Notes: generated by a model from the sequence alone, not told the origin. A stretch of 41,198 bases of DNA from Klebsormidium nitens (GCA_000708835.1 DF237671.1:1-41198), one strand, 5' to 3'. Positions 3,701 through 27,000 are shown, counted from the stretch's first letter. A program made the numbers and translations.

Positions 3701-5468
3701 ACCGCAACATGGGCCAGACCTGCGTATGTGCCAACCGGCTGCTCGTGCAGGAAGGTCAGCCCACGCCCCGCCCAGCTCCACCGCAGCATGGGCCGCATCA
3801 GAGAGCCGCTTCAAGCCGCCGATGGCCGTTTTGAGCCAGCAGAAGGCGTTGCCATGTCGAAGCTCGCACATCGTACTGTAGCTTTCACAGTCCGCTCATG
3901 CAGTCTGCCCCCGCTCGTGTGCGTCCTGCTGGTGCCTGCCGCTCACCCCCGCGTGCATGCAGGCGTGTACGACGAGTTCGCTGCCGCGTTCGCCGCGGAG
4001 GTGGCGGCGCTGCGGGTGGGCAACGGGCTGGAGGCGGGCGTGACGCAGGGCCCGCTCATCGACGAGCGCGCGGTGCAGAAGATCGAGGGCCACGTGGAGG
4101 AGGCGCTGGCCAAAGGCGCGCGGCTGGCCGCGGGGGGCAAGCGGCACGCGGCGGGGCCGCTCTTCTACGAGCCGACCATCCTGCTGGACGCCACGCCCGA
4201 CATGCTCGCCACCAGGTGCGCGCACTGCGCGGCCGGGCCGCAGCCGCGCCAAGGCCGGGGACAGGCCGGGCTGCAGGGCTTTTGAGAATGTTAATTCCTC
4301 ATGACCTTCCAACCGGTTTGAGAACTTTCATTGTCCCTTTCCGCAGAGGTTCAAGGACGTCGTAGGCACTGCAGCTTGTCGAGAACGGCTCACCTTGGTC
4401 TCAGGGATGCCACTCTGTGCTCCCGTGTTGCTGCAGGGAGGAAAACTTTGGGCCGGTGGCGCCCATCATGAAGTTCAAAACAGAGGAGGAGGCAATCCGG
4501 ATAGCAAATGACACTGAGTACGGTGAGCACCCGCATATTGCACTGAGCCCTCAAACGGCGGCGTTCTCTTCCGACCTCGTCAATCACCGTGTCGGGGTCG
4601 GCACATTACTGCCCAAAGTCTCGTCATCTTTTTTTCGCATTTGGTAGTGCGTCTCAGCAAGTGGATGGGGCTGTCTTCACTGTCCGGACTGGCGAGGTCT
4701 CAACCCCGGCGACTGCTCGTCTGTCACAGCCTCCATCTCGTATTGTCTCGTCTTACTTTTTCGTTACTAGATATGCCCCGCTCCTCTGCCGACTCTGTTT
4801 CCGCTGTTCTGCTCGCGCAGGCCTGGCGGCCTACTTCTACACGGGCAGCCTGACGCGCGGTTGGCGCGTGGCGGAGGCGCTGCAGTACGGCATGGTGGGC
4901 CTCAACGAGAGCAACATCTCCACGGAGGCCGCGCCCTTCGGCGGCATCAAGCAGTCGGGCCTCGGCCGGGAGGGCTCCAAGTACGGCATCGACGAGTACC
5001 TCGAGGTGAGCCACGCCGCGGCAGGGGCACTAAAGAAACACTGGGGGCCGCCCTCAACCGTGTGCCAGCTCTGACGGCTGGCAGAACCCGCCGGCGCTGC
5101 ATGGCCGGGGGCTGTCACAGGGGCTGGCTCGTCCGTCGACCCCCGGTGCCGCATTGTGGCCTTGAAAAGGACGCCTTCCGAACCGAGTCTTTCTTAGTGT
5201 CGTCCTCGGTCGCACTTCTGCTCTGCACCGTTCATCGTGGCTTAATCTATTGAGGACCCCTGCGAGGGTCTCACGAAACGACAGGGTGCCAGCAGACCGG
5301 CCTTGTGAACAGAGGAGGGAGGTCAGCAAAGAGCGCTTGTTAGTTACGGTACCCGCCAAGATGATTGTTGACCAAGCAGACGTGGCCGCGAGGCCCGCGC
5401 AGTCGTCTTCAACGTGGCGTGTGTCCCTGCAGATGAAGTACGTGATGCTGGGCAACATCAGGACGTGA
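768..5468 (+). CDS. SSADH: Succinate-semialdehyde dehydrogenase (ALDH5 family), probably mitochondrial; 13 exons, ~580 aa
   Basis: Exons 768-1019, 1220-1339, 1646-1794, 1935-2022, 2236-2365, 2758-2801, 2948-3124, 3261-3338, 3610-3754, 3963-4215, 4437-4522, 4821-5005, 5433-5468. All introns are GT-AG and the total is 1743 nt in frame. Motifs: [59 protein letters not shown] (catalytic Cys), [15 protein letters not shown]. Exon 1 is an Arg/Ser-rich presequence-like segment and is the least certain exon. Confidence 0.95.
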
Positions 5469-6788
5469 GGACAGATCGGGTCTGCACGAGAAACACGAGG
5501 AGGCAACAGCCCGTTGGTGCGGACAGCGGGAATCGTATGCCGTGGAGGCTGCTCAATGAAAGCTGGTGCACGCAAAGGACGACGGTTCCGAGGTCGATCC
5601 GCCAGGACGGACACAAACGACCGTTGTGGACAGCGTGTTGCGATGAGCAATCTGCACAGACGCAGAAGGATCACAAGGGTGCAGTGTGCATGTACAGGGC
5701 AATGAGGCCCCTGTCCATGTCGATGATGGTAAGTACACATTGGTTCCCAGATCTGCTTACAGAAGCTCATGAGCATCACGATAGCTTCTCTGAGACAACC
5801 CCTTGCTCGCTAGCAGCATGTTGATGCTGACTCGTAAGAAATGACGTTGGCTGGATGCTGCCATGTGAAACTTCGGAATCAGAATTATCAGAGTGTTATG
5901 TAGCTGTGTCATGCTGCGCACGCATGATGCACATGCTGGCCGGTATATACGATTCCTATTATATATCTACTGAGTCCGGCATGGCCTCGTATAACAGCCT
6001 AGGAGGCTTGCTATCGTTGCAGCCACATGCACGCATAATTCATGCATCGGGTAGCGGTGTCGATGTCCACCAATATCATGTATAGTTCAGCTGTGTATAT
6101 ACACATAAACATGCCAACTGAAGTTTAGTACACCTTGCGCTGCATATGCTAATATCTAAGTTTCCGTCCAGTACAAGTAAAGCTCCACTCGATTGGTCGA
6201 AGTGAATGTATCTCAAGAAAATGTAAAATTCGGCACAGCTTTCCCTTCATGAATAGAAGTAGTCTGTGTATCAGTGTAGACATATTCAGAGCGCAGTAAA
6301 AAAACAGTCAGCAACATTGTGAACCGAATAAGTAGTGCTTGAAAATCGATAAAGAGGAAGTTCCCAAATCCACAACATAGATTTCAATGGTCATGAGCTT
6401 CTACAAGACTACAATAGGAACTGTAACAACACATACCAGGCTGGTAACTTCCAGAAAATCCATAAGGTCTGGACTTGATTTATAATTGTTATACAAGGCA
6501 ACACTAAACCTGACAAGCATAGAAGAGCAGGAGTCATTCAACCAGGAGCTAGGGATAATTATGATGTGCAAGTCTACTTTTCTGCTCGATAATGATTCTG
6601 ATTCTAATGATATCGGGAGACGAAAGTACGTGCTTTCTTGCTCGAGAGTAATCTAGCGACGACGGTAGGAAAGTGCGTACATCTACAAGGCATGGTCCAT
6701 GTGCCTGTGTGAAATTTGTCGGGGCTTCTGTACACTGTTGAAGGCAACATACTTCCTACGAAATTCTCTGGCGTCATATCACTGAATC

Positions 6789-8848
6789 TTACTTGCTCGT
6801 CGCAACATCAATAGATGGGGGCTGATAGACCCGAGTCTCCAAAAGCGGGTTCTGGATGAACCCCTCTTCCATCCCAGAGCCGTCCTCGTGCTCAGTTGTG
6901 GTCAACAGGGGCGTAGCGATGGTGTTGGGAGATGACAGAATAATGGCTGGTACTTCTTCGTCTTCCACAGGGCACTGGCAGAGCGCCATGAGGCAGGAGA
7001 AGACCAGCGAGCACTGCAGAATATGGGAGAAGATGCCCTCAGAAGGAGCCGTGGCAGAGCACAGGACTAGGGACTAGAAGGCCCAGCAGGAAAACCATTG
7101 CCCTGGCAATGGGAGCAATAACAGCATACTAGTGCTCTTTATGACTGGAATCCAAGGATCTGCAAACGACCTGAATTCAGGGTGATGCAAAACTTCAAGG
7201 GCAGCCAATGCCTGCACTAGCCAAGAAAGAAGCACCAGCAAAACTGTTTCCACAGCAATGTGAACCTGATAATGAAGATGCCTATGATGTTGCAATGTTG
7301 CAAGTCCCTTGAGCAGAGTAATACTTTGCAGTTTTACCAAGTTTCTAGCGAGTTTCGTTATAAGAACATTAAAAGCATACCAGTAGAGCAACGGCGATCC
7401 CAATAGCCACGCAGCCAAAGAAGGACGACGCGGCGGCTTCATGTGCGCGATGGAAGACGGCAAAAGGTTCGATCACTGCAATTGAGCAAAAAAGCAAGTG
7501 AGGTCAGCAGTGCATATCGTCAAACCAAAGAAAAGATGAGCAGATTCTAATGCATCTCGAGCTTTTTCATCAAAGGGGGCGCGAGCAGGCGGGCCTGTTG
7601 TAAGCTTGCACTCTTCAAACGGTTTGGCAAATAGAGGGGCAAACGTGCTCGGCTTTATCTGCACTTGACTTTCTGTTTGAGACACAATCGTCCAATTCCG
7701 AGCTTACCTTCATTGGAAGCCTTCTGGCGTTGCACCGCAGCCAACTCCGGCTCTTCTCTGAATGTCTTCAACTTGTCCGCCAGACTGGACCTGAGGGTGT
7801 CCCAAAGGGACATGACGTGGGACTGCACCGACTGGCTCTCTTGAGCTGCATCTGCTGCCGCCCTTGCTTTGGCTTGTGCCTGCTGCTGAGCCTCCCGCCA
7901 CTGCAGCTCTTCCCGAAGCCTTGAAATGGCAGCCCTTCGAAGCTCAGAATGGATTCTTTCAATATCTAGAATGCGACTCTGAAGATGAACAGTGCTCAGC
8001 AGCTCCATAACCCTGCCAAAATGGTCATCCTGTTCGCTGTCCATCCAGCTGTCCGTCCCCAGAACCAGTCTAGGGGTCTCGTCATTGCCCCACGACCGCT
8101 CAAAGTTGCCCCCCTGCAAGAACACGTTGAACAGATCCCCTGGTGCACCCACGACTATCTCCACCTGCCCAGCTGGCTGCAGAGCATGAACGCCTCCACC
8201 CCGCAGGCCCCGCACCTGCCATGCAACCGGATTAACTAAAATTAAACCTGGATACAGGGCTTTTCATAATGTAGATGTCACAATTCACTGATGCTTGGAA
8301 CAGTTCTGTTAATCCTCCTGAAATAGAATAGTTGCAAACCTGAGTTGCAACTCCGACAAGTCAGTAACATCGATTGCTGGAGCCCATGAACTTGTAAGAA
8401 ACATCCTTTGACAGGACACGATCAGTTGACTTTGAATTACTACCACATCAACAGGGGTAGGGGCTGGGCATAGGGAAATGACAAAATGCAAGGAACCCTT
8501 TGACACTGAGATGACCTTACCAACGTCAAGGGACCAAACGGGACTTCATCAGAGTTGAAGTGATGGACATACTGGCCACATCCCCGCTGCAAAGGAGAGG
8601 AAGACAATATAAAGCAGACTCATGTGATACCTACTGTTGTACTGCAGTCACTAGAGGCACAAAGGGCGGTATCTTGAGCATAGAAAAAATTGACCAGCAC
8701 GTGACAACTTGTTCCACACTTGAAGTTCAAACGGAGCAACAAATCGTCTCTCCACACTTACCCCCTCACTCTCTGCGGATGCCTTCAAAGCACATGTGAC
8801 GAACATTACAATCAAAAAGGCCGCCCAGCGGGGTCGAATGTTAGCCAT
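6789..8848 (-). CDS. Hypothetical membrane protein with N-terminal signal peptide, ~344 aa
   Basis: Phase-compatible exons 8848-8762, 8586-8521, 8215-7708, 7475-7381, 7265-~7212 (donor uncertain), 7013-6789. Starts MANIRPRWAAFLIVMFVTCALKASA. It has an Ala/Gln/Arg-rich helical segment (ISRLREELQWREAQQQAQAKARAAADAAQ), hydrophobic segments (FFGCVAIGIAVALL / VETVLLVLLSWLVQ) and an acidic tail. No family recognised. Confidence 0.5.
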
Positions 8849-9598
8849 GGCGCTGTCTTGGTCGGAAGAAGGCCTTCCACTGCCAGGGAAGAACGTTGCT
8901 CTCGCGCGTCAGCACTGGTGCCAGGTCCGGAACAGCTTCTCAAACTGAAAACTCCGGTAAATTTTAAAACTTAAAAGTGTCGGAAGGGGGAGTTGGAACT
9001 TTCTTGAAGTTTGCAGAGGTTGTGGCCGGTTGATGTCATTGTAGTATGTAAATACGTTTTTGTGGTCGTGTCTTCTCATCTGCAGCCGCGGCGCGATCCC
9101 GATTGACTGCATATACGTTTCCAGATTGGAGCTGTACCAGAAAAATAGGTAAGCCAGTTCACACTTGAAATGAGGCATCGCACGACCTATTAAATTTAGG
9201 TATATCGTCGAGGAAGTTCAACTTCGGCATTGCCTTCTGTGCAGCGGGCGCCTTCATGCAACAGCAGGACATGTCCTGATCGCGTAGTCCTAGAGTCTAG
9301 CCGTATAGGGAGCCGCCCAGCTGCTGGTCCGGCGGCCACTTTCTATCCTCTCCTCTTTAACCGGGCTTTAACCGCACAACCCGTTGCGTGAGACTTTTCT
9401 GTTTTGACCAGTTGGCCGCGAGCTGGTTGAGGATGCTCTTCTCTTTGTAACCTTGATCATCGATGCATGCTACTTACATGGCCAAAAATCGCAATCAAGC
9501 GGAGGACTGAGACGTCATTCAGGAATAAGCTGGCCGCAAAGCTGGGGTGTGCAAGCAGCCAGTCGCTGATCAGCGACTCTCCTCGTTGGGGAGCAGGA

Positions 9599-11310
9599 AT
9601 GTCGTATCCTATCAAAGTATATCACAAAACAAGGCAGCATTTGGCGACTGTCACCGATGATACGACTTTCGGTGAGTAGAACTTCACAGCATTGGTTCTT
9701 GTCTAGATGAAAGTGGTGCCGGGGTAAGAGCTGCCATCCTGGCCTGTTGTGGTCATCATGGTTCTTCCGGCATTGAACACCTGACACTGTGACTTCTACA
9801 AATCCCCATAAGTTGGGTGGTGCTTAGATGCTGGCAAGAGCGCACTGCAACCTCTTTCTGGTCTATCCTTTTCAGTGCACTTAGCTGTCCTGGGGCCTGT
9901 TGGCGTGCAGCTCCTCTCCTTATCAAAGATGACCACCGTACGCAGAGATTTGTGCACGAGTTACAATACCCTGTTGATCAGTCGTGCTACTTGGAGAAGT
10001 GTTATGGACTTGACAAGAAGCTCCCTATATACTGACCCTTGAGAATTGTTGTCTGCCCCAGGAGAATTGAAGGGCGCTATGGCCCAAGTCTCAGGAGTTC
10101 AACCTGATGAAATGAAGTTATACTTTAGAGGGAAACATTTCGACGGCGAGACCATGGCTGAAGCAGGCGTCAAGCCGGGTGCCAAGGTCTTGCTTGTGGA
10201 GTGCGAGAACTTCCGGCAGCGGCGGGCAAGTGAACTGGAGGCAGAACAGGAGCAGGCTTACCAAAGAGCAGCCACAACGGGGAAGCAGCAGAGCCTCGCA
10301 CAGGAGGAAGCACAGAGGAGGGCACTGGCGCTGGAGGCAGAGCGCGTCGAGCGAGAGGCAAAACAGGATGAGGTTCGCAGGGGCTTACAAGCAGTAGCGG
10401 AAGTGGAAAGAGAGGTGGACCCTTTAGCACGCGAGGTATGCTGACCGCCCTATCGTGTTCGATTCTATCAAGAGGTTGTGCATACATCTGTCCTGGCTTC
10501 CTGAAACTCGTTTCCCCCATCATCTGCCCCTTCTTCCAGGTTTCTGCTCGGCCTTGTTGGGGCGGAGAGTTCCAAGCATCGCACTCCGGCGCCTGGCTTG
10601 TCTGTTGGAGACTGTGCCTCCTGTGGCGTTAGCATCATATCAGTAGGCTATGGAATATTATCTTTTGCAGGTGGATGAGATGGTGGTCTATAATTATCTC
10701 TTGCAGGTGGATGAGATGGTGGCGTCGACAAGTGGCGGAAACGTACCTGACGAGCAGCGCTCTCGGATTTTGAACGAGCTTTTCACTCAGAAACTCTTGA
10801 AGCTGGACTCAATACAGGGGGGTGACGAAGTCCGGAAGAATCGAAAAGCTCAGGTAGGCAGTCCAGATGCGTGATGATTATGACTGCATCGGTGCCCAGT
10901 GCAGGCTTTTAAATTCGTATTTTGGTAATCCGGAAGGGGAGATATGGAGGACATTCAGTTGCCCTGCGTGTCGCCATGCTTGATGATATTCTTTTCTAGA
11001 ACAATGGATGTTAAAAGACTTGAGGGAATTGTTGTGTCTGAATTGGTATCCTCAAAATAATTGACCTCTGAAGCTCACAACCCGCCTGTTAGATTGGCTC
11101 GTTACTGTGGCATCTGTCACGCAGATTGTTTCCTCATGCATGTGGAACTTCGTCAACTTAGGTTGACTGTACGCGGCTTCTTGTGCGCAGATCAGCCGCA
11201 TCGAAGACCTATCAAAGCAGCTCGACAATTATGGTAAGGGGTCCGATTCTGGCAACAGCAGAGCTGTTACAGTCGTCGACAATCGAAGTGCCTTACAGAA
11301 AGCAGAGTAA
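9599..11310 (+). CDS. BAG-family Hsp70 co-chaperone (ubiquitin-like domain, coiled coil, BAG domain), ~237 aa
   Basis: Exons 9599-9671, 10062-10435, 10707-10853 (alternative acceptor at 10671), 11191-11310; 714 nt in frame. UBL-like segment: FGELKGAMAQVSGVQPDEMKLYFRGK...AGVKPGAKVLLV. BAG signature: LNELFTQKLLKLDSIQGGDEVRKNRKAQISRIEDL. Confidence 0.85.
10651..10722 (+). repeat. 36-nt tandem duplication spanning a splice acceptor and exon start
   Basis: attatcttttgcaggtggatgagatggtgg is followed 36 nt later by attatctcttgcaggtggatgagatggtgg; the exon-start copies are at 10671 and 10707. Confidence 0.9.
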
Positions 11311-13139: not shown

Positions 13140-13931
13140 GGCCACCACTAGTCTAGCGCAGATGATGATCTCATAAGTTAGCATTGAACGCCATTCCGCC
13201 GTAGCCGTTTGCATAGCATACCGAGTCATTAATACGAACATTTTGCCCTTATATGCATGATGTGTAGGTACTGCAGTTGGTTGCTTGTTTTTCGTAGTGA
13301 ATAATGACGAACATCGGACATGACTTGCAGCAGCCGTAGCAGGCTGCAGAGTCAACTCGTTGTATCCCGATCTCACCAGAGTGTTGTCCGGTGGCTCAGT
13401 GTGGCTCAGGGTTTATAACAGCAAGTGACCATCGACTATCTCCTACGTCTCGGGCCTGGCATAATTGTGCGTGGGTTACATGCTTTTCATCGATTGCATG
13501 ACCTAATGGCAACCTTGGAAACGTACTTAAACCATCATCATCTGCATGGCAGAATGCATGCCAGAATGAACGATGATTGCATCCTACAATAAGCTCAGCG
13601 TGAATCCGGAGCTGAGACAACGCCTCATACATTTTGTAAATCACAGAGGACACAGATTCGAGGGCACAGGATCAAGAAACAGATGGACATGAGATGAACA
13701 TGCTTCAGAACATTTCACGCTACGCTCAATGGTAAGTTCATTTATCGTGTTACAAGAACGTTAATCAATCAGGAAGATGTTTGCCAGCCTGAAATTGGGC
13801 GACAGGATCAACATGTCTAATCTTGCTACAGAATGTAACCGTTCTGTCCCTAACAAAGAGATTGCGGCTTTTGGATGAATCGTTCTTTAAGACATGTCAC
13901 ATCACGGGCAAGTCACGCTAGGCCCTCGTGC

Positions 13932-16900
13932 TCACCACCCTTGCCCCTGGCTCCCAGCCCCCGAGGACCCGGGCTGCTGTGGCTGAATCATCCAGGGAGG
14001 GAGGATCGCAGGTGCCTGTGTTCCCGTCCCCACTGAACCGGGGCCTCCATTTGACGGCCAAGCGGGTCCCGTTGCAGGCACTCCTGGGTACCCTCCTTGA
14101 TACCCAAAACCTACGTTGTTCGATTGCGGCTGCACCGAAATACCTGGCGCTTGTTGTGCCGAAGGCGGGAATTGTGAGCCACCCCCAGCATATGTGGCTT
14201 GGTACGGCAGTTGGCCCCCTGCACCCGGCCGCTGCTGGTAGGGCCACGCCTGTCCTGCGGCCCCGCCTGGAGTCCCCGCCTGCCCGCCAAAGCCGCCGTA
14301 CCCGGCGCCAGCAGCTGCTGGCGGGCCGGCCTGTTGCAGCCACGGCGCCTGCCCTGGGGCCGCGTATTGGTAGGGGAGCCCCTGCTGCGGCGGGCCCCCG
14401 CTGAAGGCAGGCGTCATCCCTGGGGCTGGCCCGTAGCCAGGTACCCTCGCCCCTGGCCCAAAGCCTTGTGCGCCTGCTCCCCCAAAGCCGGGCCCGTAGT
14501 ACCCTGCCGGCCCCCGCTGTGGCCAGCTCGCACCGTACGCCGCACGCCCTGCAGCCTGCGGGGCCGATCGGAGGCCCATTTCTCCAAACCCTTCGAGAGG
14601 CCCGCTCCCAGCGACTCCCGCAGGCGCCGCTGATGGAGGCCTTGCCTGACCGTTGCCCCCTGCGAGTCCTGCCTGGCTGCTCCCGGGCGCCGGCTGCGAC
14701 CCTGGGCTTGCACCCCCGGACCCTGCACCGCCCCACACTGCCTCCTGCTGCCCGGCACGCTGCTGGCCTGGGTCGACTACCTTCTGAGGGCCTGGCACAG
14801 GCTGGCCGCCGTTCTGCCGGGGCGGACCAGGCGGGCTAAACGGATCACCCCAGGACGGAGCACCCGCAGGAGCCCCGCTGCCAGAAGCAGCCTGCGGGGA
14901 TGGCCCCTGCTGAGCGCTGCTTCCACCCTGGCAGCTGCCACTNNNNNNNNNNNNNNNNNNNNNNNNNNNNNNNNNNNNNNNNNNNNNNNNNNNNNNNNNN
15001 NNNNNNNNNNNNNNNNNNNNNNNNNNNNNNNNNNNNCGGGAACGTCACCCCAACGGGACGGAAGGCGACCCGGCCACGGGAGGACCCCCGCCGTGCCAGT
15101 AAAGCAGCCTGCGGGGGATGGCCCCTGCTGAAGCGACTGCTTCCACCCTGGCAGCTGCCACTGGACTGCTGAGGGAAGACGGCCGCAGGGAACGCAGCGG
15201 CAAACACGGGCTGGGGCCCGGAGGAGGCCTGCTGTGGCACCGCGACCACCGCGGGCTGTGCTGGAGGTGGGGCCTGACTGTGGGTAGGGCTAGCCCGCGT
15301 GGGCACGGGGGTAGCAGCGACTTCTGCAGCAAACAGCATCAGGCATCAGCGCTTGAGGACGAACCACAGCCCACGTTTGCCGATCCTTGAAGAACCTAGC
15401 ACTCTTGTCAGAGCGACCAACGTACAGTCAACCCACAGCGAGCTCATCAGCATGGCACCTAATGCACATTCACAGGCATGTATTGATCGAGCGGGCGCCA
15501 CGTGCAAGTGCTGCCTACCTGCAGGGGGAGGGGTTGCGGGCTGGCCTGGGACGGGGGAGCCGTCGAGCAGCGACACGAGGGCCGCTGGCTTCGGCGCTGG
15601 CCCCTGCTCCGCGGGGCTCCCAGTGGGAGCAACCTCCGGGAAGAGGGGCTGCGCAGGGCGTGGCGGGGGCGGCAGCTCGTAGCTGCTGCGCCGAGACGCG
15701 GACGGGGAAGTCTTGGTGCTACCAGAGAAGGCGCGCGGATCAAAGTCGGAGTCGAAGGCAACCCAGCTCGACGCATCAGCAGCGCTGGCAGCAGCGGCGG
15801 GGCCAGCCTGCATAGGTGGCGCCGATGAGCTGGCGGGTGGAGCCGCCGCTGACACGGCCTGGCCGCGAGCCTCCACCTTGGGAGCGGGCGCGGGCTCCGC
15901 TTTACTCGACTCAAGGGAGGGCCGGGTGGCGGATTCCCTCCTGGACAGAGCGCCACGCAGAGCCTCCTCTATGGACATGGCCTGCAGCGACGAGCGAACA
16001 CCCGGCGCAGGAGGGGGGGGTACGGCTGGGCCAGGCGCCGCACCGGTGAGGGGCCGGGTGAGGCCGGCGCGGGTGGCAGGGGAGGGCAGGTCGGTGCCAA
16101 ACGACGACAGCGCTGCGACGGGCGGGGAGAAGCTCGACTCCCCAGGGCTGGTCACGCGGGTGGAGTCAGTCTCCTTGAGGACGGGCCTGGGTGGCGGGAC
16201 GGGCGAGGCAAAGCCCGAGAGGTTGCCAAGGACAGGGACCGAGTCGGAGCGGCGCTGCGATCTGGGGGCTTCCTGCGGAGAACTGGTAAGGGACGGAGAC
16301 GAGGCCTTGTTGCTGGAGGGACCGTCAGGAGGGGCCATGCTGCTGCTGCTGCTCCTGCGCGGTGGGGGAGGGGCAAAACCTGGCAGGCCTCCAATGGCAG
16401 CCGGTCCAGTGGGGGCAGGCTGGGGGGCCGCAGGCTTTGGGGGAGAGGCAAAGCTGAGCTTGGGTCCAGTGGGGGACGGGAATTGCACAAGGACAGGCGC
16501 CGGTGCTGTGGGGCTGGGCGCGCCAGTCGGTGCTCCCGCGGCCTGCTGCGTTTGACTGGCTCCCTCAAAATTGGCAAAACTGGGCTGTGCAGCAGGTGCA
16601 CCCGGAGTGGGCACCACAGCTGGCGGGGGAGCCTTGGCGGCCCCTCCACCAAAGAAGGAGTCCAGATCGTGGATGCTGCTGGAATGCGCCACAGGCGGGG
16701 GGGTGGCGGCCAGCCGCAGGTCATCCAGGCGGTCCGAAATGGTGGGCGCCAGGGGAGCCCCTCGTGCGCTGCTGGGCGGGGTGATGGGGGCACTGCTGGG
16801 GGCACTCTTGGGGGGCGGCTTCTGGCCCACGAATGCCGCACTGGCGGACGACGCCAGGCTGGGACGCGTCTGGAGTGGCGGAGGCTTGGTGATAGAAAGG

Positions 16901-17258
16901 CCGTCGTTCAGCGACAGCGCATGCGACATCATCCCCGCGGCCTTCTTGCGAACGTCCTCCCCTGGCTGCCGGGCGGGAGCAGGAGCCATGGCTGGCGCAC
17001 CAGCAGGGCCACTGACCCGGGTGGGCGATTTCTGAGGGGGAGGGGTGGAGGAGGCCTGGAGGTTGGCGGAAGGTGGGGCTGCGGAGGGTGCAGCGTTCGC
17101 AACAGGAGGGAGTGTGGGACTAGCGGCAGGGGTCGAGGGGAGAGGCGGGGCAGGGATGGGGCCCCTGCTTGGCGCTGGCAGTATTGGGGTAGCCGGCTCA
17201 GGAGCAGGGCTGGGCGGGGCAGGCAGGGTGGGGAGGGGAGGGGAAGGCTGCGAATTGC
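13932..17258 (-). CDS. Very long Pro/Ser/Ala/Gly/Gln-rich low-complexity coding region (~970 aa) with WVAFDSD and WGDPF motifs; probably the 3' part of the BAG gene at 18061-18987
   Basis: Exon 17258-15519 (acceptor tatgtag, donor gtaggc, phase 1/1). Exon 15323-13932 is continuous once the false duplication at the 94-N gap is removed (1172 nt, phase closes at TGA). The upstream donor gtgagc is at 17454, next to the 604-N gap. A further small 3' exon is possible because tg|gtgagc overlaps the stop. Confidence 0.7.
14943..15036. other. Assembly gap (94 N), probably spurious
   Basis: N run whose two flanks overlap in sequence. Confidence 0.9.
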
Positions 17259-17456
17259 CTACATACATACAAGAAGAGGCCAACTCAAAGTAGGGTAAGG
17301 GAATAAGAGGCATAAGTAAGCTGTGACGAACATACAGTACAAACCAATCTCTACAAATTGTACATCTTGGTGTGCTAGTGCTTTATGGGGTACAAGAAGC
17401 TGGAAACAGAACGGTCGAAAAAGCGTGCGGGTCCTGCTCTGGCTGCATGCTCACCC

Positions 17457-18060
17457 NNNNNNNNNNNNNNNNNNNNNNNNNNNNNNNNNNNNNNNNNNNN
17501 NNNNNNNNNNNNNNNNNNNNNNNNNNNNNNNNNNNNNNNNNNNNNNNNNNNNNNNNNNNNNNNNNNNNNNNNNNNNNNNNNNNNNNNNNNNNNNNNNNNN
17601 NNNNNNNNNNNNNNNNNNNNNNNNNNNNNNNNNNNNNNNNNNNNNNNNNNNNNNNNNNNNNNNNNNNNNNNNNNNNNNNNNNNNNNNNNNNNNNNNNNNN
17701 NNNNNNNNNNNNNNNNNNNNNNNNNNNNNNNNNNNNNNNNNNNNNNNNNNNNNNNNNNNNNNNNNNNNNNNNNNNNNNNNNNNNNNNNNNNNNNNNNNNN
17801 NNNNNNNNNNNNNNNNNNNNNNNNNNNNNNNNNNNNNNNNNNNNNNNNNNNNNNNNNNNNNNNNNNNNNNNNNNNNNNNNNNNNNNNNNNNNNNNNNNNN
17901 NNNNNNNNNNNNNNNNNNNNNNNNNNNNNNNNNNNNNNNNNNNNNNNNNNNNNNNNNNNNNNNNNNNNNNNNNNNNNNNNNNNNNNNNNNNNNNNNNNNN
18001 NNNNNNNNNNNNNNNNNNNNNNNNNNNNNNNNNNNNNNNNNNNNNNNNNNNNNNNNNNNN
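17457..18060. other. Assembly gap (604 N) inside the probable BAG/low-complexity gene
   Basis: N run. A minus-strand frame is open into it at 18061, and a donor site lies at 17454. Confidence 0.95.
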
Positions 18061-18987
18061 ACCCAAGACCTCCGTTCTGAGGATCTGATGGAGCAGCAGC
18101 CTACGGACTGGGGCTACACCCGAGGCCGCAGGACCGCCTGGGCCCTGCACGGCTCTGTCCAGCTGCGAAGACAGGCCGTTCACTCGCACGACCTGCGCAG
18201 GAAAGAAGCGTCCAAATCAACCGCGAGATGCACACAGATCTGTGAGAAGTTTAGGGCTAAAACAAGGCGACACAGAAGTAGCCCCTTCCACTTAAGAGGA
18301 AGGTTTGCAGCGGCACATCTGAACAAGGATTTGTGACGGTTTGTATTAGGAAGCAACCTGAAGGGGCACTCTGCCTCAAATGCAGCATTGAGCATCTGCT
18401 CACCTGTGCTTTGCGCTGAACTCTGATCTCGCCGTCCCCGCTCACAAGATCAAGTTTCAGTAGAGTCTGAGTCAGCAGCTCATGTAAGAGCGTGATTTGT
18501 TGCTGAGCGGGAGTAATGCCAATCACAGCACTCTTGACAACCACTTCAACCTGCGCACCAACCAGAAGGACACGTGATGGAACCTGGGAAGCTTTTGATG
18601 GTGGCGGATACGACAGCAAAACTGCAGATGACAGTCAGCATGTCAGCTGTTATGACAAAGGTAAGCTTTCCCACGGGGTTTCATCTTGAGGAAAACAGCA
18701 AGTTCCACGATCCAGTTCTAAAAGAGAAGACCTTCTCAAAGATACACATCCCACCAGATTTTCTTTTGTAATTCTTAGAATCAGTCAGTAGTGCAGATCT
18801 GCCCTAACCGAGCTCCAACTGCCAACCTTAGAACCCTGATTGAGCAGGTTCCTTGCAATGGGAACATCCATGCTCAGCCCGCTGAGGTCATCTTACCTGC
18901 GCTGCAAGAGCATCAACTTCACTGCTGATTGTGGCCAAAGACTGCAGCGCCTTCTGCTCTGCCAGCGTCATTTCACCAATTGGGCCA
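18061..18987 (-). CDS. Second BAG-domain protein (partial model; 5' exons unresolved, 3' runs into a gap)
   Basis: Exons 18987-18897 (EQKALQSLATISSEVDALAAQ), 18550-18404 (LLHELLTQTLLKLDLVSGDGEIRVQRKAQ) and 18192-gap (VVRVNGLSSQLD..., open to 18061). The sequence aligns by eye to the BAG domain of the 9599-11310 gene. Confidence 0.75.
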
Positions 18988-20163
18988 CTGCCCCCTCAGC
19001 TGATGATCAGAGATAATAATCTATTAGCAGCTGCTCAGGCAGGGGTTCAACGAGGCACCCTCTCAAAAGCATCTGTCCAGGCTAAGCCAAGAAAGTCGAC
19101 TCGCAAGTTACTGACGGAACACCCTCAAAACCCAGCGGGACTTGCAATGGCTCCAGTTTCCTGCGCAACCTTGAAAATCCTTTCAACCTCGCTCCCTTGG
19201 CCCCAAGCAGCAAGGATCGAGGCTTCTCTCTAGCATTCCAGCTAACACAAAAGTAAGTGTTGGAAACCTGCATAGCAATGCTGCAAAATGCTTCTGCAAG
19301 AGGGTCGACGCCGTTCGCTGTTCAGCATCATTGGCCAGCCAGTTTTGAATGCAAGCCCTCTAGCAATTCAAAGCCTTAGCTCATAGCTGAGAATGAGCGC
19401 CAGCACACGCCTCTGATCTTGGTTCTGAGAATTGCAACTGACCTTCTTGCAAGTGCCTGCATGTGCTTTGAACAGCTTATGGGCACAATATTCCCAGATG
19501 CAACTACCGCACTGCCCACAGCAGGCAGCCACAACACAATCTCACAGCTTGAGAGATCTAGCTGTAGAGCCGTGACTGCCTTTACTCACAGCAAGAGCAC
19601 AAGCTTGAAGGACACGGCCTTCTGTTGCTGGACGATTGACGTACAGAAAAGGTTCAGAGACGTGCCACCAAGCTGGACCCGCGTCCCCAACTTCAAGGCA
19701 CCATTTCAATTTGTCAGGTTGAGCGCATGATCGCGCATCGCCAGTGCTTCTTTCACTGGCAGTGGCGCAAAACGGACCAAGAAGCCGAACATTTTTGGGA
19801 ATTGAATGCTCGTCGACGCACGGCAATTTCAACCGGGCAGTGCTCATCGGGCACAGCCGAGTGACTTTGGTGGGGTTGGTGGGCGGGTTAGGGTGGGCTG
19901 GGGTGGGCTGTGGCGGAACGACTTAGGGTGTTGGTTAGGGTTAGGTCACCGTATTAAGGTTTTAGTGTAGGTCGGAGGTTTCCCCGGTAGCAATGTGGCC
20001 CGGTACAGAGACCGTGCTGTGGTGGGTACCTTAGCTTGCATCGGTACTTGAAATCAAGCCCATGCGCGGTACCCACCTCTTTTAGACAAACGCCGACTTC
20101 CGTGCGGTTCCGGAAAATGTTTGGTGGCAGTGGCAGAATCAGAACCGTGTCGCAAAACTATCA

Positions 20164-20708
20164 AAGTAGACTCCTTTTGTTAGTGTCTCCGCCACTCTGA
20201 TTGGTGTGAATCACTCTCAACCCACCTGAAAGCACCTGAAGTGTGACAATTATTGCAGTATGTCAGTGGTTACGGGAGTGGTCACAACGTTGACAATGAG
20301 ACTGACATCGACATTGACATCGACGTTGACATTGACATTGACCCGGGGCACTTACTTTGACATTAGGGTTACGTTGCAAACGTGTGACGGTTCACGCCAA
20401 TCGACCAGCGCTTTGTTAGGGTTACGCCATTTCCCAGTGACATTAGGTTTACTCACTGACAGTGACGACCGGGCAGAGTTCTTTTAGTTTTAGTTTTGTA
20501 GGCCATTTATCCTGACCCGGTCCCATCCGTACTAGAATCCGTACCGCAGAGCGTACGGTAAAACCTGAAATTCTGACGCATTTTTGTTCAAAGGACCTGA
20601 GCTGACAGTACGGTCCACGCGGATACCCTGTGAACCTATGATCCCGCGTGTACGTAAGATGTTTCACACTTTTTTGGAGCCTGAGACACTAACAAAAGGA
20701 GTCTACTT
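20164..20708. mobile_element. Putative non-autonomous DNA transposon (MITE, ~545 bp) with a perfect 26-bp inverted repeat
   Basis: aagtagactccttttgttagtgtctc (20164-20189) is the exact reverse complement of gagacactaacaaaaggagtctactt (20683-20708). The interior is non-coding and low-complexity. Confidence 0.6.
20302..20343 (+). repeat. Seven tandem 6-mers (consensus TTGACA/TCGACA)
   Basis: ctgaca tcgaca ttgaca tcgacg ttgaca ttgaca ttgacc. Confidence 0.85.
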
Positions 20709-20895: not shown

Positions 20896-21054
20896 CCGGT
20901 GTGCTGAGACGTTCCGGTCACGCATTCCCATGTTGCGTCGCCGACGCCATGGCATTGCCTCCGTTCCAAAGTGAACGGCAGCGCTGCTGCACTGCTGATT
21001 CAAAAGCGCCTTGATTGGGTTGTCGTGGTGCCATCTTCAGAGGAGCGCGCAGCC

Positions 21055-24000
21055 ATGGAGGACGGTAAGAGCCGCTTTTTGGTCGTCTCTAGTCTGTGGA
21101 AGTCTGATGAGGGTTGTCGTACCTTGCGAATCATCGAAAGAATGCCTTCAGACAGTCAAGTCTGTGAATCGGTTTGAGAAGCAGCTAGCGCGGTCTTCTG
21201 TTAAGGAAGCTGTTGGAGCATTTGGTGAGCACGTAGGAAGCGGCACTTGACCAAGCAAAGCATTGGCGGAAGCAGCGACGGGCCAAGTTTTCACTTAACT
21301 CTTTGAATCGTTCACGGGTTGAGGAGGCGCTGGTGTTTCGTCACTGGCAATTGGCTCACACCTTGAGCACGCTGTGCTTCATATTCAGTCTGCCACCATC
21401 GTAATGTTGGTGCCTCTGAACTGACTTTTGCTGAACGGTGGTGCAGTTCGGGAGGGCAAGGACTACAACTTCCCCAAGGAGGAGGAAGCCATCCTGGCAT
21501 TGTGGGACAAGTTGGATGCATTCAAGTAAGCCTCTCTACCCAAGCACAAAGTTTCCTGCCTCCGCCCTTCTCCTTTGCCATGCGTCTGATTGCAATGCTT
21601 CTGCGATACACTTACCTGCCATCTGGACTGAAGGCTGCTGGCGCCTCTTGCAGGACCCAGTTGAAGAAGACCGAGGGCAAGCCGGAGTTCGTGTTCTTTG
21701 ATGGCCCCCCCTTTGCCACCGGGTTGCCCCACTACGGCCACATCCTGGCAGGCACTATCAAGGTGCTTGAAACGCTCCAGTCCTTGGTATTGGCAAGCAA
21801 TTCTAGATCACTATGCAGCTTCCCTCACTGATCAGGGCCTCCCATTGCCTTGGGGCCCTGATCGTCTGGGCTCTTTCAGGGGGCAACGCGCAGCAATTGA
21901 TCTACCCGTACATGACGCGAGGGCTGGGGTCGTGTCTGTTTGACACAGATTGGGACACCGAGTTGTGGCCTCTCCTGATTGCCCCCGCCTGCGCCTGTGC
22001 GGTGTGCAGGACATTGTGACCCGGTATGCCTCCACGACGGGGCACCACGTGGCGCGCCGCTTTGGGTGGGACTGCCACGGGCTGCCCGTGGAGTACGAGA
22101 TTGACCAGAAGCTGGGGATCAAGTCCAAGGACGACGTGCTGGCGCTGGGCATCGGCAACTACAACGAGGAGTGCCGCGCCATCGTGATGCGCTACTCCAA
22201 GGAGTGGGAGAAGACGGTGTCGCGCCTGGGCCGCTGGATCGACTTTGAGAACGACTACAAGACGCTGGACGCGTCGTACATGGAGAGCGTGTGGTGGGTG
22301 TTTGCGCAGCTGCACGCCAAGGGCCTCGTCTACAAGGGCTTCAAGGTCATGCCCTACAGCACCGGCTGCACCACCCCGCTCTCCAACTTCGAGGCAGGCC
22401 TCAACTACAAGGTGCGCGCCCGAACCCGCTAGCGGAACTTGGCAATTGCTTGAAGGAAGGGGGTGGTGTCCATACGTATGCCGTCTTCCTCTATCCTCTT
22501 GTTCGGGAGGGGCTAAGCTGATCGACTTTTGTTTTGATTCGGACCAGCAACCACCTTCGACACCATGTTCCCCCTCAGCCGACCTGTTTTGCTCAGCCTC
22601 TGCCCTGCTCCCTTGTCGCCAGGACGTGAGCGACCCCGCTGTCCTGGTGGCCTTCCCCCTGGAGGACGACCCCGACGGCGCTGCGCTAGTGGCGTGGACC
22701 ACCACCCCCTGGACCCTGCCCAGCAACCTCGCACTCTGCGTCAACGCCGCCTTCACCTACGTCAAGGTCAGCGCTGCGCAGGCTCTGTATCTCGAACTTG
22801 CGCGGCACCACTGCGATGGCGCCATGGTGTAACCTGGGGCCAGAGAATGAGGAGCAGGCAAAGATGGCACGGGATGCAATCTGGGGTGTGCGGATCTGGC
22901 TTTCTCTGTATGCCAGGTTGTGTTGCAGTCTTTTGACGGCCGTGCGCTTGCTTGCCCGGGGTTGGCAGGTGAAGGATCGGCAGAGCGGGGCGGTGTACAT
23001 GGTGGCGGAGAGCCGGCTGGCGCAGCTGCCCAGCAAGAAGGCCAAGAAGAGCGCGGACGCAGCGGCGGCAGCACCCAACGGGGTGGCGGCCAAAGATGCG
23101 GCCAAGAAGGAGGAGGGCGGCGCCAAGAAGGGCGGCAAGAAGGACAAGAAGGACAAGGACGCCAAGGAGGCCGGCGCTGCGGCTGCACCGGGGCTGGACA
23201 CTGCCGCGTACGAGGTGCTGGGCAGCTGCAAGGGGGAGCAGCTCAAGGGACGCAAGTGAGGCCGCCACCAGCCTCGAACCCGATGCGCTGAGCTCAGCTT
23301 TGACTTACAGCAGTAGTCTACCCACTGGCCCGAGACATCGTTCCAATCGTTGTGTCCCTGTCGTTGGGCTCCTCCATCAACCTCCTCAGCCGCTTCTGCT
23401 CGTGATTTGCAGGTACGTTCCCCTGTTCAACTATTTCGACGAGCAGGCGTCCACGGCGTTCCGCGTGCTGGCAGACGACTACGTCACGGACGACAGCGGA
23501 ACAGGTACGCGGCCAGATCATTGATCGAGAGGCGCACGCCTGTGGGCGCCAGCCCGGTAAGCCAAGTGGAGAGGGCGATAGGGGATGCCTCGGCCGACAA
23601 GCATGTGCGTGCTGGGCCACCGCTGACATGCTGTGTGCCTCGTGCCCCGTGTGCAGGGGTGGTGCACTGTGCCCCGGCCTTTGGCGAGGACGATTACCGG
23701 GTGTGCCTGGCGGGGGGGATCATCGCCAAGGTGAGGGGCCAGGCAGGCGCCAATCGCACCCGTCGCTCTTCACCAACCACTGCACGAGAGGTCTTAATGC
23801 GCAGGGTCCTCCCTCGAAATCCGCTGTCGTTAGTGCGCCTGTCCAAGTGTGGCTCACCAGTTGCGCATGCTGTGTGGATGCAGGGGGGCGACTTCCCGAT
23901 TGCCGTGGACGACGACGGCCGCTTCACCGCCAAGGTCGTCGACTTCCAGGGCCGCTACGTCAAGGAAGCCGACAAGGACATCATGGCCGCGGTCAAGGCA

Positions 24001-27000
24001 AGCACCCCACACGCGGCGCGCATTGCTCATGCATGGGCAATCAGGTGCGTTGATGCCCTGGCTCGCTTGCCTGCTGCCCTGATGCTGTTGTGTTGCGCTC
24101 ACGCGGGTGTGGCGGTGTGCAGGCGCGGGGCCGCTTGGTGTCGGCGGGCACCATTGTTCACCCGTACCCTTTCTGCTGGCGCTCCGAAACGCCCCTCATC
24201 TACAAGGCCGTCCCCAGCTGGTAAGCCAAGCCGGCCGAGCGCCACCGTCTCGCGCGTATGGTTGAGATCGACCTTGTGCAGGGCATTACTTGCTGGTCGT
24301 GATCTTTTTGCCTAGTCCCGAAAGAAGCCGCTTGCTCAGCGGTCGGCGCTATATCGAGTGGCTTTCTTGCCACCAATAAGAGGGGCTCTGAGCGTTGGCC
24401 TGAGGTGCTCGCTGGGCGTGCTGCAGGTTTGTGGCGGTAGAGACGATCAAGGAGCGGCTCCTGGCGGCCAACGCGCAGACACGGTGGGTGCCGGCTTACG
24501 TGAAGGAGAAGCGGTTCCAGAACTGGCTGGAGAACGCGCGCGACTGGGCCATCAGCCGCAACCGGTACTGGGGCACGCCGCTGCCCATCTGGCGCTCCGA
24601 CGACTGGCAGGAGCTGCGCGTTGTCGGCAGTATCGCCGAGCTCGAGCAGCTCTCCGGATTCAAGGCAAGCCGCCGCGCGGCCCAGCCGCTACCGGGCTCA
24701 GTGTGTCAGACATGCTCATTTGGTGATTCTTCGGGTAATCTGCGGACGTTCCTGTTCATCGTTGGCGACATGCTGAAGCATTTCTGGCTGGTGATAACCC
24801 GACCCGTGTGTGTGCTCGTGCAGGCGACGGACCTGCACCGGCACCACATCGACCACGTGACCATCCCGTCCAAGCGCGGCCCGGAGCACGTGCTGAGACG
24901 CTGCGAAGAGGTGCGGCACACCCCGCTGTCAGCCCCCTGACAAACGCCGCACAGCCAGGCCGGGTCGGGTGCACGCCTCCTGCCACCTTCTGGGTCCTTG
25001 CTGGAGTCGTGCAGAATGAGAGTTTTGTCAAGGCTACCTAAGGCCAGGCAAGCCCCGGGGCCGCATCTGACGGCTCGGCTGCTGGCTAACGACAGCGTTC
25101 TGGTGGCGCAGGTGTTTGACTGCTGGTTCGAGAGCGGTGCCATGCCGTACGCACAGGCGCATTATCCGTTCGAGAACAAGGCGCATATGGAGGCCAATTT
25201 CCCCGCAGACTTCGTCGCAGAGGGCCTCGACCAAACGCGCGGCTGGTGAGCCCCCCCTTGCTGCCGTCCGCGCCGCCGCTTCTCGAGCAGCTGGGTTGCT
25301 GCTTGCCTAGGGCCACTTGCATCGAATTGCTAATAGTCATATTGCTCCGTACCGGTTGAGTTCGTGCCAGGTTTCTGTAAGTGGTCCACAGTGTAGGATC
25401 ATGTTTGGGCCGCGGTGGCTGAGCGGCCCGGTGTGGGGCGGTACGTGCAGGTTCTACACGCTGATGGTGCTGTCGACGGCGCTGTTCGACAAGCCCGCGT
25501 TCAAGAACCTGATCTGCAACGGGCTGGTCCTCGCGGAGGACGGCAAGAAGATGAGCAAGCGCCTGCGCAACTACCCGCCCCCCACCGAGCTCATCGACGA
25601 GTACGGCGCCGACGCGCTGCGGCTGTACCTCATCAACTCGCCCGTCGTCAAGGCCGAGCCGCTGCGCTTCAAGAAGGACGGCGTCTTCGCAGTGGTCAGC
25701 TGCTCCGCCGCACTGGCTGCTCGAAAGCAACTGGCTCCTGTCTTGGCGGCCGCTCTCTTTCTGCGTCGTTTTCTGGTCAAGCTCGTTAACTGTCCTCGCT
25801 GGCTTTCTTTGCCATGCGACAACCCCCATGCCCCCACCCTGTGCTCTCCTGAACGCCCGTCCCCTCACGTCCCCCATTCCTGCTGTGGTGCAGATCAAGG
25901 ACGTGTTCCTGCCATGGTACAATGCGTACCGCTTCTTCGTCCAGAACGTGCTGCGGCTGGAGGCCGAGGCCGGGGGCCGCTTCGTGCCGAGCAGCGGGCG
26001 CGAGTCGGGCAACGTGCTGGACCACTGGATCCACAGCGCCACCGACAGCCTGGTGCTGGCCGTGCGCGCCGAGATGGCGGCGTACCGCCTGTACACCGTG
26101 GTGCCGCTCCTGCTCAAGTTCATCGACGGCCTCACCAACATCTACGTGCGCTACAACAGGAAGCGCCTCAAGGGCGCGCGCGGCGACGCCGACTGCCGCA
26201 CCGCGCTCTCCACGCTCTACCACGTGAGCCACTCGCCGCCCTTCTCGATGCTGAAGCAGGCCGACGGGCCAGCCCGGGGGCTGCTATTGAGCACGAGAGA
26301 CACGCGCGTGATCTTTGAGCGAGCATCTCCAATTTCTCGACGGAGCAGCCCCGGGCGGGTTCAAGGAACTGATAAGCAGTCTATGTACTGGTGCGCTACC
26401 AGTGCGATGATTACTGAGACGGCGTGCGTGCAGGTGCTGCGCACGGTGTGCTGCGCGATGGCGCCCTTCACGCCCTTCTTCACGGAGGTGATGTACCAGA
26501 ACCTGCGCCGCGTCGAGGGCCCCTCTGCGGAGGCGAGCGTGCACTTTTGCGAGTTCCCCACCACGCAGGCGGCCGTGGACCCGCGCATCGAGCAGAGCGT
26601 GGCGCGCATGCAGACCGTCATCGAGCTGGGCCGGACCATCCGCGAGCGCCGCGCCAAGCCCGTCAAGCAGCCCCTCCGGTAAGCACTCGACAAGGCACTG
26701 CTGCCACATGCCCCACTTGCTCCCCGGCACTGCGTCCAAGCTCATGTTTCCTCCACCAAGTCTTTTTGCCTCTGTCTCACGGCGTTCCTGCTTGTTGCGC
26801 AGGGCCATGACGGTGGTGCACAGCGACGCCGCGTTCCTGGAGGACATGACCGGCAAGCTGCGCGAGTACGTGCTGGAGGAGCTCAACGTGCGCACGCTGC
26901 ACGCCTGCAACGACCCCCTCCAGTTCGCCACCCTGCGCGCCGACCCCGACCTCAAGTCAGCCCCCCCCGCCCCCACCTCCGACCACTGCTCATGCGGTGG

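Follow-up and report, generated by a model that had tools for sequence, protein, structure and literature searches.

A probable single gene in Klebsormidium nitens joins an N-terminal BAG domain to a long disordered tail

Introduction

Can a BAG domain placed at the very start of a protein and followed by a very long low-complexity tail belong to one gene, or is such a layout the product of a faulty assembly, and what might the tail do for the domain? The question is raised by a minus-strand locus in a 41,198-nucleotide (nt) stretch of Klebsormidium nitens DNA (GCA_000708835.1 DF237671.1:1-41198; this whole stretch is called the window here). A first-pass annotation of the window, made from the sequence alone, had described a BAG exon that stays open into a gap of 604 N, a splice donor at 17454 just past the gap, a 580-codon exon and a further Gly/Gln/Pro/Tyr exon, all of which lie where it had placed them. 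From these pieces it had proposed one gene whose disordered tail recruits the BAG domain to clathrin-coated vesicles.

Our analysis indicates that the locus is probably one minus-strand protein-coding gene, made up of five coding exons plus one or more 5′ untranslated region (UTR) exons and encoding about 1,109 residues with the BAG domain N-terminal and the disordered tail after it. Its parts are as follows.

19443-19500, minus: part of a 5′ UTR exon; the contig runs 233 nt further than the stretch compared; joint 18999 to 19443 (ends CT..AC) in four runs
19000-19442, minus: 5′ UTR intron; RNA joint skipping 443 letters, the unspliced form being a minor contig
18897-18999, minus: start-codon exon; coding sequence 18971-18897, 25 codons, BAG helix 1
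18404-18550, minus: BAG exon 2; 49 codons, core of helices 2-3, RNA joints at both ends
17455-18192, minus: exon 3; true length 196 nt, phase 1, encoding the last part of the BAG domain (VVRVNGLSSQLD) plus a linker, interrupted by the 604-N gap
17457-18060: assembly gap 1; 604 N standing for about 63 real letters, a roughly tenfold over-estimate; the matching interval in the orthologous contig L001 is 150 nt
17259-17454, minus: intron 3; gtgagc ... tgtag, donor 17454 (gg|gtgagc), acceptor 17260-17259
15519-17258, minus: tail exon A; 580 codons, Pro/Ala/Ser-rich, predicted disordered, with conserved islands
15324-15518, minus: intron 4; 195 nt, RNA joint 15323 to 15519
13932-15323, minus: tail exon B; Gly/Ala/Pro/Gln, stop codon 13934-13932, 1169 coding nt in the mRNA
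13682-13931, minus: 3′ UTR; at least 250 nt, the RNA contigs ending at 13682-13789

The coding exons add up to 3327 nt, or 1109 codons, when the length of exon 3 is taken from the RNA contig coordinates. Residues 1 to about 90 make up the BAG domain and residues from about 140 to 1109 the tail, some 970 residues. The start codon is the ATG at 18971, preceded by an in-frame TGA (18998-18996) 24 nt upstream in the same exon, so that no N-terminal extension is possible and the BAG domain begins at Met1.

Results

Spliced contigs connect the BAG exons to the tail

Contigs of four public runs from four studies (X1, X4, X5 and X13) were aligned to positions 13600-19500. Each of X4, X5 and X13 has one contig, 3404-3497 nt long, that spans exon 2 to the 3′ UTR, joining 18556/18548-18402, 18190-18075, 79 letters that are not in the assembly, 17259-15519, 15323-15137 and 14916 to about 13700, while X1 has identical junctions spread over two contigs that break at the exon 3/tail junction. 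Because the predicted introns are skipped at GT..AG boundaries, we take these contigs to be spliced transcripts.

Exon 3, which the assembly shows only in part, measures 196 nt and ends in phase 1, which fits the split codon G+GC at 17258, and ten loose letters of the X1 contig make it end in Q-P-S-G, as in the orthologue on L001. A zero-length gap 1, which the gggt common to both of its edges might suggest, is ruled out by the 79 letters that the RNA carries between 18075 and 17259. The assembly also has two surplus letters relative to the RNA contigs, at 18102 and 18107, and its own translation past 18107 is therefore wrong. In the second gap (14943-15036, 94 N), alignment shows the adjoining 15037-15136 to be an error-ridden second copy of 14817-14942; the RNA skips the 220 letters from 14917 to 15136, that is, the 94 N and the duplicate copy, and the frame is kept. 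Both gaps are assembly faults, gap 2 being an overlap artefact. Closing the first gap had been proposed as a check on the gene model, and it came out in favour to the extent that spliced contigs cross the gap, which stands for about 63 exon letters.

Minor RNA contigs at 18527-18924 and 18972-19472 keep intron 1 and the 5′ UTR intron, respectively. The contig retaining intron 1 has about one tenth of the depth of the main contig, and in it the reading frame meets a stop two codons into the retained intron.

The same layout is present in related algae

A word-indexed search with tail exon A returned one protein, P0001, on a 12.3-kb contig (L001) that aligns in synteny with about 15 kb of the window (72-85% DNA identity). 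L001 is gap-free, its exon 3 is open, 199 nt long and in phase 1, and the gene encodes 1121 residues. The corresponding search with tail exon B returned P0003 and P0004 and led to three further contigs (L002-L004). The contig of P0003, L002, carries a complete gene of about 1108 residues with the same five coding exons, a 190-nt exon 3 in phase 1 and the same start context; its identity to the window is 65% in tail A and 52% in tail B. A one-letter frameshift in a G run of its tail exon (about 2335-2342), on a contig labelled as 2x coverage, was read through with X and is probably a sequencing error. L003 and L004 start within tail A and carry the distal tail. In both L001 and L002 the 25-codon first exon and the upstream in-frame stop are also found. 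Since the exons, the phase-1 junction and the open frame are the same in L001 and L002, the fusion is conserved and is not a quirk of a single assembly.

Downstream of the orthologue on the metagenome contigs L003 and L004, at a distance of 1.6 kb, lies a Ty3-type retroelement with reverse transcriptase, RNase H and a PHD-finger integrase (4063-7420 and 4057-7414, respectively).

These data also bear on the possibility that contig merging or read-through transcription makes two genes, one short with BAG alone and the other a proline-rich orphan, look like one. A contig across two genes does not by itself prove a single transcript, the X1 contig breaks at the exon 3/tail junction, and a published survey describes a Klebsormidium gene next to a gene for a BAG protein with a ubiquitin-like domain (UBL+BAG) as 'BAG domain alone' (preprint 10.1101/2020.12.23.424083). 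Yet the join is a canonical GT..AG junction inside coding sequence in runs of three independent studies, with a continuous frame and phase 1 at both sides, and the X1 contig still bears 10 exon-3 letters ahead of the tail exon. Nor does the tail exon have a conserved start codon at its 5′ end, the preceding 200 nt being intron-like, and the two orthologues, whose proteins diverge by up to about 35-48%, share the phase of the junction and the open frame. We give two separate genes hardly any weight, and the proposal that BAG and tail form one gene is borne out by the single spliced contigs of X4, X5 and X13 and by the layout kept in L001 and L002.

A plant group-I type BAG domain at the extreme N-terminus

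Exon 2 alone clears the Pfam cut-off for BAG (PF02179, 28.5 bits against 23.4, E 2.3e-6), as does its counterpart in L001 (28.1 bits). Compared with solved structures, a profile of exon 2 from three species matched Arabidopsis BAG2 best (4HWD, E 2.7e-5), then BAG4, BAG1 and BAG3; the best-matching structures also include 4HWH, 4HWC, 4HWI and 4HWF, and human BAG4 and BAG5 matched more weakly. In the alignment to AtBAG1, 2 and 4, the E of HELL, KLD, GDG[ED] and QRK are retained. The residues of human BAG1 that contact Hsp70 are Glu212, Asp222, Arg237 and Gln245 (as cited in preprint 10.1101/2020.12.23.424083). By these matches the N-terminal domain is classed as a plant group-I type BAG domain, placed at the extreme N-terminus.

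Searches for further relatives through this domain came back empty: a word-indexed search with BAG exon 2 within its open reading frame gave zero candidates, and a metagenome locus scan with the BAG exon alignment gave zero confirmed relatives.

The tail is predicted to be disordered and carries invariant islands

Tail exon A is dominated by Pro (23%), Ala (18%) and Ser (15%). AlphaFold2, run on the four-species alignment, gave it a mean predicted local distance difference test score (pLDDT) of 44 and a single 12-residue helix; the tail is thus modelled as intrinsically disordered, in keeping with the first-pass description. The last 220 residues, in the region that the first-pass annotation had called prion-like, are low in charge (3% charged residues) and rich in conserved aromatic ones (11%); Gly makes up 25% of them, Ala and Pro 15% each and Gln 12%, with more Pro and Ala than in classic prion domains. 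Comparison of the window with L001 over 964 codons gives a ratio of non-synonymous to synonymous substitution rates (dN/dS) of 0.29, a value that marks the tail as being under purifying selection.

The four-way alignment shows where this conservation is concentrated, namely in invariant short islands amid fast-changing Pro/Ala/Ser linkers. Eight invariant runs of at least 7 residues occur in the tail, and none of 20,000 shuffles (0/20,000) reaches as many. The longest invariant run in the four species is WVAFDSDFDPRAFS, equalled in 8 of 20,000 shuffles, followed by LPPPPRPAQPLFP and PAILPPWMIQPQQ. The islands and motifs discussed here are the following.

16894-16950, minus: island RKKAAGMMSHALSLNDGLS, protein 243-261; invariant in the window, L001 and L002
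16642-16677, minus: island SIHDLDSFFGGG, protein 334-345; invariant in three species, contains DLDSFF
16234-16251, minus: RSDSVP, protein 476-481; matches the 14-3-3 mode-1 pattern RSxSxP, within a conserved island continuing as VPVLGNLSGFASPVPP
15937-15972, minus: IEEALRGALSRR, protein 569-580 (exon residues 429-440); sole predicted helix of at least 4 residues in tail exon A, conserved in four species
15724-15765, minus: island WVAFDSDFDPRAFS, protein 638-651; includes WVAFDSDF (15765-15742)
15637-15675, minus: proline-rich invariant island LPPPPRPAQPLFP, protein 668-680
14838-14852, minus: WGDPF, protein 804-808; the only strict DP[FW] match, not conserved
13974-14012, minus: C-terminal invariant island PAILPPWMIQPQQ, protein 1084-1096

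The motifs singled out by the first-pass annotation (WVAFDSDF, WGDPF at 14852-14838, DLDSFF and FANF, the last within 16578-16567) are all present. RSDSVP becomes RSESVP in L001 and RSETVP in L002, the VPVLGNLSGFASPVPP island being shared by three species; in total, one RSxSxP and three RRxS sites are conserved in the tail. Aromatic positions are still aromatic in 26 of 48 columns, against 216 of 901 other columns that are identical, a comparison that is indicative only as the two criteria differ.

Beyond these orthologues the tail is hard to find. Pfam gave zero families for either tail exon at E up to 10, the J domain included. An exhaustive phmmer search of 1.84 billion representatives with tail exon A returned only the 50%-identity cluster of P0001 and one spurious repeat protein, and a metagenome locus scan with the tail A alignment gave zero confirmed relatives. 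Among ESM Atlas look-alikes, tail A had no usable match, and those of tail B were all proline-rich 'MISS' clusters, whose 0.78 falls short of the usable range. The spurious protein, P0002, was rejected as a tail relative, its match being a repeated AMEPAWARGRGEDV unit. As far as these searches reach, the tail appears to be restricted to a small algal clade.

Such isolation would suit a tail that is evolutionarily young filler, a translated low-complexity extension with no specific function, beside a BAG domain that alone matters: a single genuine cluster among 1.84 billion representatives, no Pfam family, no usable Atlas match and an extreme composition in tail exon A all fit that description. 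Against it stand the dN/dS value, a frame free of stops over about 970 codons in three to four species, the non-random number of invariant runs and, with the reservation just made, the retention of aromatic residues. We regard the filler explanation as highly improbable.

Clathrin adaptors are a candidate partner, not the leading one

The earlier functional proposal was that the tail binds the appendages of AP-2/AP-1 through WVAF-acidic and DPF motifs, which would place BAG nucleotide exchange at clathrin-coated vesicles as a counterpart to auxilin. Motif definitions for DP[FW], FXDXF and WXX[FW]X[DE] were taken from PMC5694535 (see also PMC3794858), and common patterns were used for other coat ligands.

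Several features speak for the proposal. No element of the tail is better conserved than WVAFDSDFDPRAFS, which holds a W/F/acidic cluster of the general kind that appendages bind. Its WVAFDSD, invariant in four species, comes near to WxxF-acidic, although its acidic residues follow the Phe at +1 and +3, not at +2, and WxxF directly followed by an acidic residue arises in only 1.3% of composition shuffles. The window and L001 each have one DPF. Endocytic accessory proteins, moreover, typically possess long disordered tails.

The strict motifs tell against it. In the four orthologue tails, regular-expression searches found no FxDxF (FDSDF carries Ser at the Asp position), no strict WXX[FW]X[DE] and zero matches to the clathrin box, DLL/DLF, W-box, NPF, gamma-adaptin ear (GAE) and beta2 helical motifs; the sole clathrin-box-like match sits outside the tail, in BAG helix 2 (LLKLD). 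The DPF is single and would occur at least once in 12% of shuffles, and it is lost in L002 (WGGPF) and absent from L003. Known endocytic accessory tails bear many such motifs, and the multiplicity that gives them avidity is absent here. Furthermore, the established nucleotide-exchange factor for clathrin uncoating is Hsp110, and a literature search covering about 8 million papers for a link between the BAG domain and clathrin uncoating found none in titles and the openings of abstracts.

Of the earlier expectation that the motifs would be conserved in orthologues, the half concerning WVAFDSDF holds and the half concerning DPF fails, and recruitment to clathrin/AP coats finds no support from strict motifs other than one non-conserved DPF. 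Binding to AP-2/AP-1 appendages through these two motifs is, in our view, unlikely. A vesicle-coat appendage is a possible partner, one candidate among others and not the leading one, and the related idea of a BAG-type exchange factor that would be brought to vesicle coats by the invariant WVAFDSDFDPRAFS, through AP-2/AP-1 or through another appendage or mu-homology domain, we hold to be quite unlikely as well. Two other classes of docking motif, the LC3-interacting region/Atg8-interacting motif (LIR/AIM; by regular expression) and two phenylalanines in an acidic tract (FFAT; by inspection only), had no match in the conserved islands.

A convergent UBL+BAG gene lies next door

About 2.5-4 kb downstream, on the opposite strand and in convergent (tail-to-tail) orientation, lies a canonical UBL+BAG gene (about 9590-11235, plus). 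Its ubiquitin match (PF00240, 25.3 bits, E 1.3e-5) is slightly below the 25.4-bit cut-off, and its BAG match has an E of 5.9e-11. The middle BAG exon of both genes is 49 codons long and bounded by the same two phase-0 intron positions, with 47% identity, and L001 retains the UBL+BAG / BAG+tail pair. We read the two adjoining genes, from their sequences, as local paralogues. Relative to plant group-I BAGs (Arabidopsis BAG1-4 and this neighbour), to which its BAG sequence is closest, the gene described here differs in having no ubiquitin-like domain, in carrying the BAG domain at residue 1 instead of near the C-terminus and in its extra disordered residues, about 970 in number.

A published plant survey (preprint 10.1101/2020.12.23.424083) assigns a UBL+BAG architecture to the K. 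nitens gene kfl00722_0030 and a 'BAG domain alone' to kfl00722_0040, and states that the BAG domain lies in the C-terminal region of all BAGs. The consecutive identifiers suggest an adjacent pair like the arrangement found here. In that survey kfl00722_0040, like the bryophyte 'BAG alone' genes PpBAG10 and Mapoly0049s0106, is given a BAG domain only, a long tail being unmentioned; in the literature searched we found no other mention of it. The gene described here is probably kfl00722_0040, a match that is good but indirect, as it comes from gene arrangement rather than from sequence or length.

At the neighbour's BAG exon, the acceptor and the first 17 nt or so of the exon are tandemly duplicated (10664-10724, plus; ttgcaggtggatgagatggtgg occurs twice, 39 nt apart), and the duplication offers two alternative 3′ splice sites. 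On the other side of the locus, upstream of the gene, dispersed AACCCTAA pieces (plant telomere-like, telo-box) are found at 19880-20480 together with a run of GTCAAT/GTCGAT hexamers at about 20300-20350, and a class-I aminoacyl-tRNA synthetase gene follows in divergent orientation (about 21000-24600, plus), syntenic with L001 1-3569, where PF00133 is matched.

Discussion

Some observations count against the account of one gene with a targeting tail. The RNA status of the runs was labelled only by guess, and their transcript nature was inferred from the GT..AG-bounded skips. For the 69 unread letters in the middle of exon 3, only the comparison with the orthologues and the agreement of the frame on either side speak against a stop codon, and the joints between exon 1 and exon 2 rest on 22-30 letters on their short side, under the 31-letter criterion. 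An RSxSxP would appear by chance in about one in five tails of such composition (an estimate from residue frequencies, not a shuffle), and all roles proposed for the tail derive from its conservation and composition. In the BAG domain, the position of human BAG1 Gln245 looks like Asn (VRVNGL) in a manual alignment; the equivalent of Gln245 is missing in several plant BAGs (preprint 10.1101/2020.12.23.424083).

With the single-gene account in hand, we propose how the protein may work. The BAG domain would bind the nucleotide-binding domain of a cytosolic Hsp70 and speed the release of ADP, and the tail would serve as a multivalent tether whose islands (WVAFDSDFDPRAFS, LPPPPRPAQPLFP, SIHDLDSFFGGG, the short helix and others) may dock on partner proteins. 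Docking of this sort could determine where nucleotide exchange and client release happen. The conserved RSxSxP and the three RRxS sites suggest control by (basophilic) phosphorylation or 14-3-3 binding, and a C-terminus so rich in aromatic residues points to self-association or to entry into condensates.

Human BAG3 combines a BAG domain with a long disordered region bearing docking motifs, RSxSxP 14-3-3 sites and proline-rich motifs, and, as a scaffold, directs Hsp70 to specific assemblies. By analogy, the design proposed here is most like that of animal BAG3 with the domain order reversed: both proteins pair a BAG domain with a long disordered region of short motifs, RSxSxP and proline-rich ones included. 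Unlike BAG3, the algal protein has neither a WW domain nor IPV motifs; its disordered part shows no sequence similarity to that of BAG3, and the two belong to different lineages.

Auxilin, GAK and the plant auxilin-likes share with it the concept of an Hsp70 co-chaperone domain attached to a disordered region that could bind coat components. Theirs is a J domain, a stimulator of ATP hydrolysis, whereas here the domain is BAG, acting in nucleotide exchange; the tail, moreover, has neither clathrin boxes nor DLL motifs, and its DPF is not repeated. Under the coat model, if it holds, the protein would act at the same catalytic step as Hsp110, whose fold is unrelated and for which we know of no described coat-binding tail. 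In that case no earlier BAG protein would have been dedicated to taking coats apart, and a streptophyte alga would have, on the nucleotide-exchange side, a counterpart of auxilin.

Two faulty gaps hide this gene in the current assembly, and the corrections needed are local: new gap sizes, and removal of the two surplus letters and of the duplicated end. In the published plant BAG survey it was probably entered as 'BAG domain alone'. The usual description of BAG proteins puts the BAG domain at the C-terminus or close to it and leaves it to other modules to decide where Hsp70 releases its client. In the gene described here this layout is reversed, with BAG first and about 970 disordered residues after it, an order confirmed by RNA and conserved in related algae near the base of the land plants. 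It is a real, apparently lineage-restricted architectural variant of the BAG co-chaperone family, and its compact set of invariant short motifs makes the targeting of a plant-lineage BAG protein directly testable.

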